Position numbers and translations under genes: made by a program. This document shows positions 27,319 through 64,000 of a DNA stretch of 64,000 nt, piece by piece (position 1 is the stretch's first letter; each line of letters starts with the position of its first letter). The DNA lies in NCBI RefSeq assembly GCF_048593235.1, contig NC_133620.1, positions 332,645,765-332,709,764 on the forward strand, read 5' to 3'. Below the pieces are notes generated by a model that saw only the letters and a list, made by a program, of their open reading frames with translations, did not search any database and was not told where the DNA came from. The DNA comes from Sminthopsis crassicaudata (lineage: Eukaryota).

Positions 27319-28676
27319 GCATAAAGAATGAGATTATAAATAAATTAGAAGAACATAGGATAGTTTACCTCTCAGACCTGTGGAGGAGGAAGGAATTTGT
27401 GACCAAAGAAGAACTAGAGATCATTATTGCTCACAAAATAGATAATTTTCATTATATTAAGTTAAAAAGCTTTTGTACAAACAAAACTAATGCAAACAAG
27501 ATTAGAAAGGAAGTAACAAATTGGGAAAACATTTTTTACAGTTAAAGGTTCTGATAAAGGCCTCATCTCCAAAATATACAGAGAATTGACTCTAATTTAT
27601 AAGAAATCAAGCCATTCTCCAATTGATAAATGGTCAAAGGATATGAAGGGACAATTCTCAGAATATGAAATTGAAACTATTTCTAGTCATATGAAGGAGT
27701 GTTCCAAATCATTGTTGATCAGAGAAATGCAAATTAAGACAATTCTGAGATGCCACTACACACCTGTCAGATTGGTTAAGATGACAGGAACAAATAACGA
27801 TGAATGTTGGAGGGGATGTGGGAAAACTGGGACACTGATGCATTGTTGGTGGAGTTGTAAAAGAATCTAACCATTCTGGAGAGCAATTTGGAACTATGCC
27901 CAAAAAGTTATCAAATTGTGCATGCCCTTTGACCCAGCAGTGTTTCTACTGGGCTTATATTCCAAGGAAATACTAAAGAGGGGAAAGGGACCTGTATGTG
28001 CAAGAATATTTGTGGAAGCTCTTTTTGTAGTGGCTAGAAACTGGAAACTACATGGATGCCCATCAATTGGAGAATGGCTGAATAAATTGTGGTATATAAG
28101 TGTTATATATTATTGTTCTGTAAGAAATGATCAGCAGGATGTTTTTAGAGGCCTGGAGAGACTTTCATCAACTGATGCTGAGTGAAATGAGCAGAACCAG
28201 ATCTTTGTATATGGCAACAGCAAGATTATACAATGATCAATTCTGATGGGCGTGGCTTTTTTCAACAATGAGGCTTGAATCAGGTCTGTTCCAATGGTCT
28301 TGTGATGAAGAGAGCCATCTCCATCCAAAGAGAGGAGTGTAGGGAGTGAATGTGGATCACAACATAGCATTTTCACTTCTTTTGTTGTTGTTTGCTTGAA
28401 TTTTATTTTCTTTCTTATTTTTTTTCCTTTTTGACATGATTTTTCATATGCAGAAAGATAATTGTATAAATAAGTATGTTTATATTGGATTTACATATAT
28501 TTTTACCATGTTTATCATTTATTGGATTACTTGCCATTTAGGAGAGGGGGTAGGAAAAAGGGAGAGAAACTGGAACACAAGGTTTTGTAAGGATTAATGG
28601 TGAAAAATTACCTTTGCATATGTTTTAAAAATAAAAAACTTCAATAAAAAATTAAAAATTAAAAAAAAAATAAAAA
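27319..28676 (+). mobile_element. 5'-truncated L1 (about 1.35 kb of ORF2 3' part plus 3' UTR)
   Basis: ORFs 27216-27545, 27586-27870 and 27916-28185 are frameshifted L1 ORF2 pieces (KLKSFCT, REMQIKT, CWRGCGK, CPSIGEW). Ends in an A-rich tail. Confidence 0.95.

Positions 28677-59483: not shown

Positions 59484-59550
<67 letters not shown>
59484..59550. repeat. (TA)n(TG)n microsatellite
   Basis: Direct inspection. Confidence 0.95.
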
Positions 59551-59554
<4 letters not shown>

Positions 59555-59866
59555 AAATATTTGGGGGGAATGGATTCTGAGAAGATGGTGGAATAGGCTG
59601 GTAAATTTTAAGCTCTCACCTATAAATAGAACAAATTTATACCTCAGGGAAAATACAGATTGGTGAAAAATTAAGAAGATTTGGGCAGAACAGGATCCTC
59701 CTGTTTCAACCCAAGATCTGAAGAAAGACCCAGGGCTAGGGATTAACCAGTATGAAGTGCAAACACTTGCAGTCTAGCAAAAGCATTATTTCCATGGGCC
59801 ACACCAAAAAAATTCTCCTTTCCTGTCCATCTCAAGCAAAAAATACAAGAGAACTGAGCCACAGTC

Positions 59867-59957
59867 CTCTTACTAGAACACTAATGCTCTTCCTCTATGT
59901 CATGATTCTTTTGTTTTCAACACAGGTTACAGAATTGGGGAAGAAGAAAACAAAACA
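59867..59957 (+). repeat. 91-bp direct repeat, copy 1 (copy 2 at 62195-62285)
   Basis: 90/91 identities by manual alignment. Confidence 0.95.
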
Positions 59958-59983
59958 TGATATACGAAAACTGATATGAACTA

Positions 59984-60511
59984 CCGTGTTTCCCCGATAA
60001 TAAGACACTGTCTTATTTTTTTTTTGGACAGAAAAACACCAGAGGGCTTATTTTCAGGGGAGGGCTTATTTTAATGAACATTGACAGCAATTTTAATAAA
60101 CAGGTAAATGTGAATAAAAAAATGTACCTTTATTCAATAATGATCGTATCATCTTCTTCAACAACATCATCATAAGTGTCCGTACCCTGAATTCAGTCCT
60201 GGATGTCTTGCGCCTCCATTTCCTTCAGAAGAAGTGGACCCAATCTGTCATGTCCAGCAATATCACTGCTGCAGCTCTGATTGGATGCAGCTCAGAGCGC
60301 GGCATGTGCTTCATGTGGAGGGGGGGGAGGAACGGGGACGACGGTGCATACAGAGGGTACCATAATGTAGTGTGTAGCGCAGGGGATCACCTTCACTACA
60401 GTAGCAATCTCAATAGGGCTTATTTTCGGGGGAGGGCTTATTTTAGAGGAATCTTACACAGTAAGGGGAGGGCTTATTTTCGGGATAGGTCTTATTATCG
60501 GGGAAACACGG
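59984..60511 (-). mobile_element. Non-autonomous Tc1/mariner-superfamily element (Tc2/pogo-type MITE), 528 bp
   Basis: Perfect 23-bp TIRs CCGTGTTTCCCCGATAATAAGAC / GTCTTATTATCGGGGAAACACGG. TA TSD at 59982-59983 and 60512-60513. Five subterminal AGGGCTTATTTT direct repeats and many intact CpGs. Confidence 0.95.
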
Positions 60512-60979
60512 TAGTATAGAGTGAAGTGAAGAGAACAAAAGAAAAATTTATTCTATAGTATCTATATTATAAAAACAATCAATTCAAAAAGATTTAAGAA
60601 CTTTGATCAAATAAATAATGAATCATGATTCCAAAAGAGTGAAGAATGGTGTCCACCTCATGACAGAAAGATGATAAATTAATAATGTAGAATAGAGAAA
60701 TAAAGGACTGATATATACAATGCTTAGACATGGCTGATGTAGGAATGCTTAACTATATTTATATGATACAAGAGTCTTTCCCTTCTTTTTTTCTTTATGA
60801 TGAGTGGGAAAAGGTGGAAAGGAAAAAAAAATAGAAAAAAATTACTTTAAAATTAATTAGAAAATGTAGAGTAAGTAAGACTAGAGTGGAATGAGAAAGT
60901 TATTCCTCCGTTTCTTCTATAATTATCAATCTCAAATCTATTTGATCACATCATAAGATTTAATTCAATAGAAAAATAG

Positions 60980-61437: not shown

Positions 61438-62110
61438 AACTTATATCCCAAAGAAATACTAAAGACGGGAAAGGGACCTCTATGTGCCAAAATGTTTGTG
61501 GCAGCCCTCTTTGTAGTGGCTAGAAACTGGAAACTGAATGGATGTCCATCAATTGGAGAATGGTTGGGTAAATTATGGTATATGAAAGCTATGGAATATT
61601 ATTGTTCTGTAAGAAATGACCAGCAGGATGAATACAGAGAGGCCTGGAGAGACTTACATGAACTGATGCTGAGTGAAATGAGCAGAACTAGGGGATCATT
61701 ATACACTTCAACAACAATACTATATGAGGATGTATTCTGGTGAAAGTGGATATCTTCAACATAGAGAAGATCTAATTCACTTCCAGTTGATCAATGATGG
61801 ACAGAAACAGAGAAGGAACACTGGGAATTGAGTTCAAACTGTTTGCACTATTGTCTTTCTACCCAGGTTTCTTTTACCTTCGGAATCCAATTCTTACCAT
61901 GCAACAAGAAATTTGGTTTTACACACATATATTGTATTTAGGTTATATTGTAACACATGTAAAATGTATGGGATTGCCTATCATCTAGGGGAGGGAGTAG
62001 AGGGAGGGAGGAGAAAATCTGGAAAAATGAATACAAGGGATAATGTTATAAAAAAATTACTCATGCATATATACTGTCAAAAATTATAATTGTAAAATTA
62101 ATTAAAAAAA
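61438..62110 (+). mobile_element. Young 5'-truncated L1 inserted in an antisense MIR
   Basis: ORF 61492-61743 is the L1 ORF2 C-terminus. A-rich tail. TSD agaatgaaa(g/t)cca at 61425-61437 and 62111-62123. Confidence 0.93.
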
Positions 62111-62194
62111 AGAATGAAATCCAGAGAATTTAGATGAATTGTCCAAAACCACAGAGAGTTTGCAAATAATAAATTTGGTATTTAAACTCAAGTT

Positions 62195-62285
62195 CTCTTA
62201 CTAGGACACTAATGCTCTTCCTCTATGTCATGATTCTTTTGTTTTCAACACAGGTTACAGAATTGGGGAAGAAGAAAACAAAACA
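62195..62285 (+). repeat. 91-bp direct repeat, copy 2 (probable donor)
   Basis: Continuous with the degenerate antisense MIR on its left and with unique DNA on its right. Confidence 0.9.
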
Positions 62286-64000
62286 ATATGACAGTGTTTA
62301 CGGAAACTGTTCATTGCCAGAACTGAGGTGCTAGGACTGCTCCAGCTGTGCTAATGATTCAAGTAAAAATAATATTCCTTAAATGACTAAGGGAAAAACA
62401 AACAAACAAACAAACAAAAAAAAAACCCTTTTTTTGTGAATAACAGTTTTCAGAAAAGAAAAAGCAAAGTAGACAGATAGGGGGAAAAACAATTAAAAGG
62501 ATACATTGACAAAAGCATCACCTTTCTTTGGTTTCTAGAAGTCATTTCTTTTCAACAAGGACATAGAAAATATTGCAGTTACATAAAGTAATCAGTCAAT
62601 AATACAATCAATCAATGGATAGGAGCAACAAAGCCTGTGCTTGAAAACTTGAATTTGTCTTCAAAGCTTTGTCATACACAATAGAATCATGCTTTATTTG
62701 AATTAATTTCGTTTAACTGATTTTTAAGAAACTATGCTCTCTACTTTGTATTACTATCTAGGACCCTACCTAGGTGACACAATAGAAAGTTGGTCCCTTC
62801 TCTGTAAGTCACAGTCCCAGAGACTTTGGGGGGATTTGTCCATTAAGCAAGGAACCTAGGACTTCCTAGCTTTAAGATCCCTCCATTATCCACCATACCA
62901 TGATGTCTAAAATAAACTTTACCCTTTTTGAGAAGATAGGTCTACATTCAAAAGAAAAGCCAGAGGTCATTCTCCATTGTACAGATGAGAGAATCAAGGT
63001 CCAGAATGGTTAACTATTACAAAAGTTACACAAAGTAATAAGTAGCAGAGAAATGATTTGAACTGAAGTTCCACAACCCTAAGCTCAACACTTTGCTGTC
63101 CAACAATGACTTTCTTATAATTGTATTATTATTACTTTGAAAGATTGAGAATTTCTGGCCAAGAACGTATATTATTTTGCTTTGGTCTACTAAGAAATGG
63201 CTAGGATATATTTTTTTTAATTGGAATTGTTTCTAGCTTTCATCCTAAACATATATGCACGCAAATTTTATATATCTACATCGATCTATGAGAAAGAAAC
63301 CAGTTGAGCAGAAAGACAAACCAAAGATGACTGACTTTCCAGTGCTTATTATAAGGAACCTATCAGAAAATCTCTTCTTGGAGAGCCATGGTGAACCCCA
63401 GATAGCCTGGGGCGCATATTCAATGTTCCTTTCTCCCCAACTTCCCTTAGCCTTAATAATGTTGACTCAGGGAAGCCAAGCCTGGAAAAGAACTACAACA
63501 AACCATCCCGGTCAGGCTTTGCCTCAATAGGCCAACTTCATGTACCATGCTATAGGGCCCGATGGGGCTAGGCTCTTGTAGAAAGACTGGCTTCCCTGCC
63601 TGCTCACATCCAAGATCACGACCTTTAGCCAATCTTCATTAACAGACAAACGTGAGAAGGGAGGGAAGAGTCATGAATGTCAAAATGCTGCAGAGGGCTT
63701 GGGCTCAGGAGCTGGTACTAAATGGTCACCCTCCCCACTTGGGATAATTATATATTACTAATGGGTTAACCTTCTCAGGTGTTTAGAGAATTGCCATCTG
63801 CTCACAGCCAAGGCCTGAGTTTGACAGGCAAGGGGAATGAAGTCTGATTATAACAACACACCAAGTTTTAACTGTTTTCATCTCTGTCTCTTACTGCCAG
63901 CTTCCTTTACCTGACCCTCACTAGCAACGGGGGAGAGCAGTGAGAGGCCCTTCAGAGAGCAGAGTGAAGGGATTTTGCTGATCTAGGAACCTTATATTTC

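Follow-up and report, generated by a model that had tools for sequence, protein, structure and literature searches.

A young-looking Passer/Tc2-type MITE in the genome of the marsupial Sminthopsis crassicaudata

Does the genome of the marsupial Sminthopsis crassicaudata carry a recently inserted cut-and-paste DNA transposon, and from where could its family have come? The question is raised by a 528-bp element on contig NC_133620.1, within a stretch of 64,000 nucleotides that was analysed as a whole (hereafter, the window). An earlier note on this stretch had described the element as young, of Tc2/pogo type and possibly acquired horizontally. To our knowledge, cut-and-paste transposons have been inactive in most mammals for tens of millions of years, bats being the well-documented exception. 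We find that the element is a real, young-looking MITE (miniature inverted-repeat transposable element) of Passer/Tc2 type in the pogo superfamily, and that marsupials are a new host group for this known family. It is likely, in our judgement, that this MITE was inserted recently, that it was mobilised in trans and that marsupials acquired the family horizontally.

The element consists of a 482-base interior between two 23-nt terminal inverted repeats (TIRs), with a TA outside each end (Table 1). The TIRs had been called flawless and the target duplication intact, and so they are: the arms are 100% complementary, and the repeat finder extends the match to 27 nt when the palindromic flank is counted. 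With the element removed, the insertion site reads ...ATGAAC TA GTATAGAG.... Searching the window with the TIR 23-mer at up to three mismatches returned these two sites alone (shuffled sequences lead one to expect 0), and a looser family-type TIR pattern gave no sites in the window beyond the two ends of the element. The five subterminal 12-bp boxes previously pointed out correspond to exactly five exact matches of AGGGCTTATTTT in the window, all on the plus strand and all inside the element. The length (528 bp, under about 800 bp), the TIRs, the target duplication and the lack of any open frame with a transposase domain are together those of a MITE.

On the minus strand the element translates to ...GTDTYDDVVEEDDTIIIE*, the acidic peptide tail ending in AATAAA that had already been noticed. 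By tblastn, its coding remnant is identical to the last 45 residues of two transposases, P0006 and P0066, at 41 of 45 positions, with one in-frame TGA (E 4e-24); other proteins of the family align over the same stretch, all at lower identity than P0006. Because the acidic tail aligns with the C-terminus of P0006, it can be identified as a true pogo-type transposase C-terminus. Beyond position 60267, tblastn gave a single weak, gapped extension to 60282, against P0013. The transposase N-terminus (MSTKRK...) was not found in any frame of the element, and no catalytic sequence is left. The element is therefore an internal-deletion derivative of an autonomous transposon, as had been supposed, with its junction at about 60268-60291. 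The CCAAT box reported on the minus strand is present as a pentamer, but it sits at this deletion junction, just upstream of the coding remnant, and a promoter role for it is unsupported.

Table 1. Features of the element and of its left flank, in window coordinates.
Feature	Coordinates	Strand	Basis or remark
Left target-site duplication, TA	59982-59983	.	Direct reading of the sequence
Left TIR, CCGTGTTTCCCCGATAATAAGAC	59984-60006	+	Perfect inverted match to 60489-60511; forms the 3' end when read along the former transposase gene
Degenerate box, GTCTTATTTT	60010-60019	+	Motif map; followed by a T-run; inverted relative to the adjoining TIR
Two exact AGGGCTTATTTT boxes (starts 60043, 60061)	60043-60072	+	Exact search; spacing 18 bp; inverted relative to the left TIR
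AATAAA poly(A)-type hexamer	60129-60134	-	Sequence; overlaps the TAA stop (60130-60132)
Transposase remnant, last 45 codons, SDIAGHDRLGPLLLKEMEAQDIQD*IQGTDTYDDVVEEDDTIIIE	60133-60267	-	tblastn; in-frame TGA at 60193-60195
Non-coding interior, presumed 5' untranslated region and deletion junction (~60268-60291)	60268-60405	-	No transposase homology beyond 60267
CCAAT pentamer	60280-60284	-	Sequence
Three exact AGGGCTTATTTT boxes (60415, 60433, 60469)	60415-60480	+	Exact search and motif map; direct relative to the right TIR
Right TIR, 5' end in transposase orientation	60489-60511	-	Inverted match to the left TIR; plus strand GTCTTATTATCGGGGAAACACGG
Right target-site duplication, TA	60512-60513	.	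Direct reading of the sequence
Left flank (outside the element), local duplicate of 62191-62309	59863-59973	+	97.9% identical over the first 95 bp, then gapped

The partner transposase P0006, recovered from a Logan contig, is an uninterrupted protein of 432 aa with the Pfam domains DDE_1 (2e-19) and HTH_Tnp_Tc5 (7e-11). Its catalytic triad is D175, D279 and D315, with 35 residues between the last two (DD35D). A search of PDB sequences with P0006 found no solved relative. The 90% cluster of P0006 includes P0066, a sugar glider protein (Petaurus breviceps papuanus, XP_068919392) that is annotated on a 2.3-Mb contig; residues 195-626 of XP_068919392 are 98% identical to P0006, and a SCAN domain stands ahead of them. 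An intact transposase matching the tail of the MITE is thus present in at least one marsupial. In two gene models, P0066 and P0103 (XP_012664069, 'myeloid zinc finger 1 isoform X2' of Otolemur garnettii), a SCAN domain from the host is joined by splicing to a complete Passer transposase; either intronic insertions were wrongly annotated here, or these are nascent fusions of host and transposase, of the sort known from KRAB/SCAN genes.

The Passer family of the pogo superfamily is characterised by DD35D transposases of 400-500 aa with HTH_Tnp_Tc5, with or without BrkDBD, by TIRs shorter than 30 bp and by TA duplications (Gao et al., 2020, PMC7386202; Wang et al., 2023, PMC9976928). The window element has the TA duplication and a 23-nt TIR of the CCGTR...ATAAGAC form (CCGTRTTT...ATAAGAC in the family), and its partner P0006 supplies the 432-aa length, the DD35D triad, HTH_Tnp_Tc5 and DDE_1, so that the Tc2/pogo assignment of the earlier note can be narrowed to Passer. 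It differs from described Passer elements in being a 528-bp deletion derivative without a catalytic domain and in having a marsupial host; no BrkDBD was detected in the partner at E<=0.01, though a single motif fits the family definition. Described members include active Passer (PS) elements of fish (PMC7386202, PMC9976928). Scme-PasserB1 of Schmidtea mediterranea (1,738 bp, 431 aa) has the TIR CCGTGTTTCCCCGAAAATAAGAC and carries AAAATAAGCCCT boxes in its first 80 bases (PMC9976928, Table S1); its TIR is identical to that of the window element at 22 of 23 bases, and the AAAATAAGCCCT boxes are common to both. Fish, lizard and bat Passer TIRs fit a CCGTATTT...ATAAG pattern (supplement of PMC9976928). 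The 'TC2' group of pogo-like elements is an older name with the same host spectrum (Dupeyron et al., 2020, PMC7325037), and its hosts match the protein relatives found here: Stegodyphus, Helobdella, fish, snake and a lemur-type primate.

The 'PasserC-bats' elements, such as those of Myotis and Rhinolophus, have TA duplications and 22-27-nt TIRs of CCGTA/CTGTG type (PMC9976928, Table S1), and other recent DNA transposons are known in bats (PMC10162687). They too are recent-looking Passer elements in a mammal, and no named protein stands closer to the marsupial transposase than P0013 of Rhinolophus (82% identity), whereas the listed bat TIRs differ from that of the window element in their inner sequence (CCGTATTTGCCGGCGTATAAGACG and similar). 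The host genes POGK and POGZ also descend from Passer transposases (PMC7386202). They share the ancestral transposase family with the window element but are old, syntenic host genes with added KRAB or zinc-finger (ZNF) domains, unlike a mobile non-coding copy with TIRs. A Zootoca relative is named 'pogo transposable element with KRAB domain' by NCBI.

Two other assignments were tried and rejected. Tigger/pogoR, whose transposases combine CENP-B_N with HTH_Tnp_Tc5 and vary in spacing from DD29D to DD36D, is ruled out, since no CENP-B_N domain was found in P0006 at E<=0.01 and the TIR begins CCGTG; Tigger TIRs begin with a CAG-type sequence. Tc1/mariner proper (DD34E/DD34D, with a DDE_3 or Transposase_1 catalytic domain) is ruled out by the DD35D triad and by a DDE_3 score of 20.8 bits in P0006, under the cut-off of 28.6.

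The subterminal boxes are laid out in an ordered way. Each marks the core of a longer unit, about 18 bp in length, in which the inner half of the TIR (AGGTCTTATTATCGGGG; AGG[G/T]CTTATT[T/A]TCGGGG) is repeated without its terminal AAACACGG. Read in transposase orientation, the 5' end has units starting 14, 32, 68 and 86 nt from the tip and oriented like the TIR, the three exact boxes sharing an 18-bp grid with a box within the right TIR itself (60487). At the 3' end, units lie at 62 and 80 in the 10-nt motif map (the exact boxes begin 60 and 78 nt inside the element) and are inverted relative to their own TIR, so that all units point one way along the element. In a nearly complete autonomous relative from a metagenome (L003, described below), such units occupy offsets 14, 32 and 86 from the 5' end, and in several metagenome MITEs they are mapped to 14, 62 and about 80. 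That this layout is conserved between ends that are merely 74-84% identical, and in the planarian element as well, argues that the units are functional. As the earlier note had proposed, they are candidate transposase-binding sites, a role made most likely by analogy with the multi-site ends of other Tc1/pogo-type elements. Sleeping Beauty and Tc3 have Tc1-like ends of inverted-repeat/direct-repeat (IR/DR) type and a DD34E transposase; they resemble the window element in having several repeats per end that look like binding sites, with inner copies lacking the terminal cleavage bases. They differ from it in belonging to another superfamily, and the 3' inner units of the window element are inverted relative to its own TIR.

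From what the family suggests, a mechanism can be proposed. The element keeps only the parts that act in cis: its TIRs, the array of ~18-bp units, a 5' leader of about 115 nt and the last 45 codons of the transposase with their stop and poly(A) hexamer. It would be unable to move alone, and the 432-aa DD35D transposase of P0006/P0066 type would be supplied by full-length copies elsewhere. With its HTH_Tnp_Tc5 DNA-binding region this transposase would recognise the TIR and the inner repeats; it would then cut at the tips of the TIRs and insert the element into a TA, which would become duplicated.

Relatives of the element were found outside vertebrates. A scan of JGI metagenome contigs with the exact TIR pattern gave at least 120 loci. 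Most of the listed matches are TA-flanked elements of about 400 bp with the TIR, in which only the terminal 90-105 bases are common to the window element, at 74-84% identity. Among the best-scoring of them, many MITEs keep the last 25-70 codons of their own partner transposase, P0009; an architecture of 5' end, C-terminal tail and 3' end therefore recurs independently. The contigs bearing these MITEs have a GC content of 0.40 and a CpG observed/expected ratio (o/e) of 0.87, which indicates that their host is not a mammal (a non-vertebrate eukaryote). They also hold F-box, O-FucT and PIG-F genes and a gypsy-type reverse transcriptase; for the PIG-F gene, plant and chordate clusters tie in score in the Atlas search. 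The loci (L001-L120) come from Ga0210059, JGI24021J15306, JGI24022J15233, JGI24158J21664, JGI24159J19872 and Ga0187758/60.

L003:35-1859 (Ga0058703_1019014) is a nearly complete autonomous Passer with its TA, the TIR CCGTGTTTCCCCGAAAATAAGAC, the boxes, about 310 nt of leader and an intact frame for a DD35D-type transposase of 431 aa (P0001); the contig stops short of the right TIR. P0001 contains DDE_1 (9e-21), HTH_Tnp_Tc5 (2e-13) and HTH_Tnp_1 domains (Pfam). Its stop and an ATAAA lie at 1738-1747, in the same arrangement as in the window element. The first 97 nt of the MITE from its right (5') end are 84% identical to positions 37-133 of L003, and the two transposases, P0006 and P0001, are 62% identical. 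L003 has the TIR of Scme-PasserB1, but its subterminal sequence differs, and it is thus not the Schmidtea element itself. TIR scans of viral contigs and of bacterial and archaeal genomes found nothing, and a transposase scan of viral contigs found none; there is accordingly no sign of a viral vector in those collections.

How old is the insertion? The element holds 15 CpGs, in line with the earlier count of more than a dozen, with an o/e of 0.59 against 0.09 in the rest of the window and 0.08 in the 3 kb on either side; relatives in hosts without CpG depletion have values of 1.05-1.16. The TIRs and the target duplication comprise 50 nt, including four CpGs, that show no change. If neutral rates are assumed to be 1.5-3e-9 substitutions per site per year, and ten times higher at CpGs, the probability of no change in these 50 nt is 5% at about 8-16 million years (My) and 50% at 2-4 My. 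We infer that the insertion is no more than roughly 10 million years old. Its young look is borne out by the perfect ends and target duplication and by the CpGs that have been kept, and we read the copy as young, not necessarily brand-new, and its family as resident in a methylating genome for some millions of years.

The origin of the family was approached through its transposases, which were collected by a word-based search with the L003 frame. Full-length members are about 425-442 aa long, and the named ones come from lizard, bats, frogs, snake, spider, whipworm and fishes; a Helobdella protein gave a 72%-identical partial match. Quick maximum-likelihood trees were built of the relatives found here and of these only, including proteins of Stegodyphus, a listed Passer host. 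In these trees the transposases conflict with the phylogeny of their hosts. The marsupial pair (support 100) falls in a weakly resolved group with Rhinolophus, Trichuris suis, Zootoca joined to Otolemur (support 98-99), Crotalus and Ranitomeya, and Pipistrellus pairs with Xenopus (support 95-96). Constraining the five mammal rows to a single group worsens the fit by 155.6 log-likelihood units (lnL; p-AU 1e-64). The marsupial lineage has a stem of its own of 0.18 changes per site, which means that no close donor is present in the databases searched. The tree conflict, the patchy host range and the intact frames would fit repeated horizontal transfer, in keeping with the horizontal acquisition that the earlier note had raised, and such transfer has already been proposed for the TC2/Passer family (PMC7325037). 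Most likely, the family entered marsupials by horizontal transfer and not by descent from old mammalian Tc2 elements. The whipworm proteins are P0029 and P0051 (Trichuris suis) and P0096 (Trichuris trichiura), P0029 being the one placed in the weakly resolved clade of marsupial, bat, lizard and primate sequences. A parasitic nematode is a conceivable route of transfer.

Several points weigh against this reading of a recent, trans-mobilised and horizontally acquired MITE. Only one copy of the element lies within the window, and a word search of the called open reading frames with its 103-aa open frame gave one weak, uninformative match and no other copies. The partner transposase is known from Petaurus breviceps and from a Logan contig, and its presence in the genome to which the window belongs is presumed. 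Set against P0006/P0066, the remnant has 4 of 45 codons changed (about 3% of bases), from which it follows that the copy or its MITE subfamily has some age, or that its true master is another variant. One of these codons is the TGA, which stands in place of R in the Petaurus copy and of G in P0006; this stop is consistent with CpG decay from CGA. The age limit depends on substitution rates that were assumed. The mammal group that was constrained in the tree was named after the tree had been seen. Finally, tree conflict by itself can also result from old paralogous lineages with differential loss.

A stronger form of the same history is that the family is still transposing in the host species, driven by a currently intact transposase gene, the window copy being very young and possibly polymorphic. 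The intact 432-aa frames, one of them with a zero-length terminal branch in the tree, and the flawless ends of the window copy speak for it, whereas this copy is about 3% off the known transposase tail and carries a stop that probably arose by CpG decay; moreover, an intact reading frame in a database is no evidence of expression or activity. We hold this form to be possible yet doubtful. Equally tentative is its extension to a whole host group, in which horizontal transfer would have brought Passer into Australian marsupials no more than a few million years ago and the family would still be mobile there, with intact 432-aa genes and thousands of MITEs, some of them polymorphic. Together with the 98%-identical sugar glider transposase, such continuing mobility would imply either that the family spread from one marsupial order to another or that it entered repeatedly from a single source, possibly a parasite.

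The opposite explanation, an old and vertically inherited Tc2-type fossil kept intact by chance or by gene conversion, is very improbable. Old TcMar-Tc2 fossils do exist in mammals, in the RepeatMasker class DNA/TcMar-Tc2 that we take to be equivalent to the TC2 group, and the in-frame stop and the four codon differences from the nearest transposase would suit some antiquity. Those fossils are decayed, however, and the window copy is not. Tens of millions of years in a CpG-depleted genome should have brought near-total loss of CpGs and mismatches between the TIRs (the 5% limit stands at about 8-16 My), whereas the TIRs and TA duplication are perfect, the CpG o/e is 0.59 in a window at 0.09, and the coding tail is 91% identical to that of an intact 432-aa transposase.

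Selection rather than youth could also have preserved the copy, had it been co-opted, for instance to regulate the surrounding gene or as the precursor of a hairpin RNA or microRNA. Hairpin RNAs can arise from MITEs whose inverted ends are long, and an exon-like segment lies 1.7 kb downstream. Rfam, however, gave no family at threshold (best matches 17-22 bits against cut-offs of 50-55), and the preservation is even across the TIRs, the boxes and the dead coding tail, as would be expected from youth rather than from selection; we regard co-option as very improbable. An assembly artefact or contamination by parasite or prey DNA in the scaffold, which the close TIR relatives in non-vertebrate metagenome DNA and the transposase relatives in whipworm might suggest, is hardly credible in view of the clean TA duplication within continuous CpG-poor host sequence, the CpG o/e of 0.59 already below the 1.05-1.16 of relatives in hosts without CpG depletion, and the 98%-identical transposase annotated on the 2.3-Mb contig of another marsupial.

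A recent insertion of a horizontally acquired Passer MITE, which we prefer, can be set beside what is known of the family in mammals. In the 2020 survey its mammalian hosts were only Chiroptera and Afrotheria (PMC7386202), to which the 2023 survey added monotremes, rodents, an insectivore and cetartiodactyls (PMC9976928). Marsupials are absent from the host lists of both surveys (PMC7386202, PMC9976928), and the marsupial genus, order and higher-group names looked for do not occur in the supplementary files of the second. Tc1, Tc2, mariner and pogo elements go unmentioned in a paper on Tasmanian devil transposons. In the genome paper on Antechinus stuartii, 3,098 'TcMar-Tc2' copies are tabulated without comment, totalling 1.75 Mb with a mean of 563 bp; by length alone, this mean fits a Passer MITE of the kind described here.

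A fresh-looking MITE together with an intact matching transposase from a marsupial would add a host group missing from both Passer surveys. It would also give another datable case of horizontal transfer into a mammal and mark a source of recent insertional variation in marsupial genes. Were the family indeed still mobile, marsupials would be the second mammalian group, after bats, with ongoing DNA-transposon activity, and the interest would be greater if both ongoing activity and transfer between marsupial orders proved true. Fish Passer transposases already serve as gene-delivery tools, and a naturally mammal-adapted Passer with conserved multi-site ends would therefore be of technical interest too.

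The surroundings of the element bear on one further claim of the earlier note, that it is nested in an old L1. This was not supported: the closest recognisable L1 piece, a 3' fragment at 61439-62010 on the plus strand, begins about 930 bp away. The fragment is 85.6% identical to 23277-23858 and 82% identical to 27954-28267, and an open reading frame within it (61492-61743) contains an ORF2 C-terminal motif (...ALFVVARNWKLNGCPSIGEWLGKLWYM..MEYY...).

The left flank is a local duplicate of a sequence lying downstream of the element, the 97.9%-identical part corresponding to 62191-62285. The upstream duplicate breaks off about 10 nt short of the left TA; a looser MAFFT alignment carries it up to the TIR itself. 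Within the window, the downstream duplicate (62191-62309) shows no homology to the other side of the element, and no paralogous empty site spans the insertion point. A duplicate patch ending beside a transposon end is possibly filler DNA from the repair of a break. The downstream duplicate resembles the end of an intron followed by a 73-bp exon: the exon-like segment (62253-62325) has a polypyrimidine tract, boundaries that can be written as cag/GTTACAG...CTGAG/gtgcta and the open frame VTELGKKKTKQYDSVYGNCSLPEL, and in its upstream duplicate (59925-59983) this frame is shifted through small deletions. A (TG)n microsatellite lies at about 59496-59555, roughly 430 bp upstream of the element, and is read as an open reading frame beginning MCVCVCVCVC....

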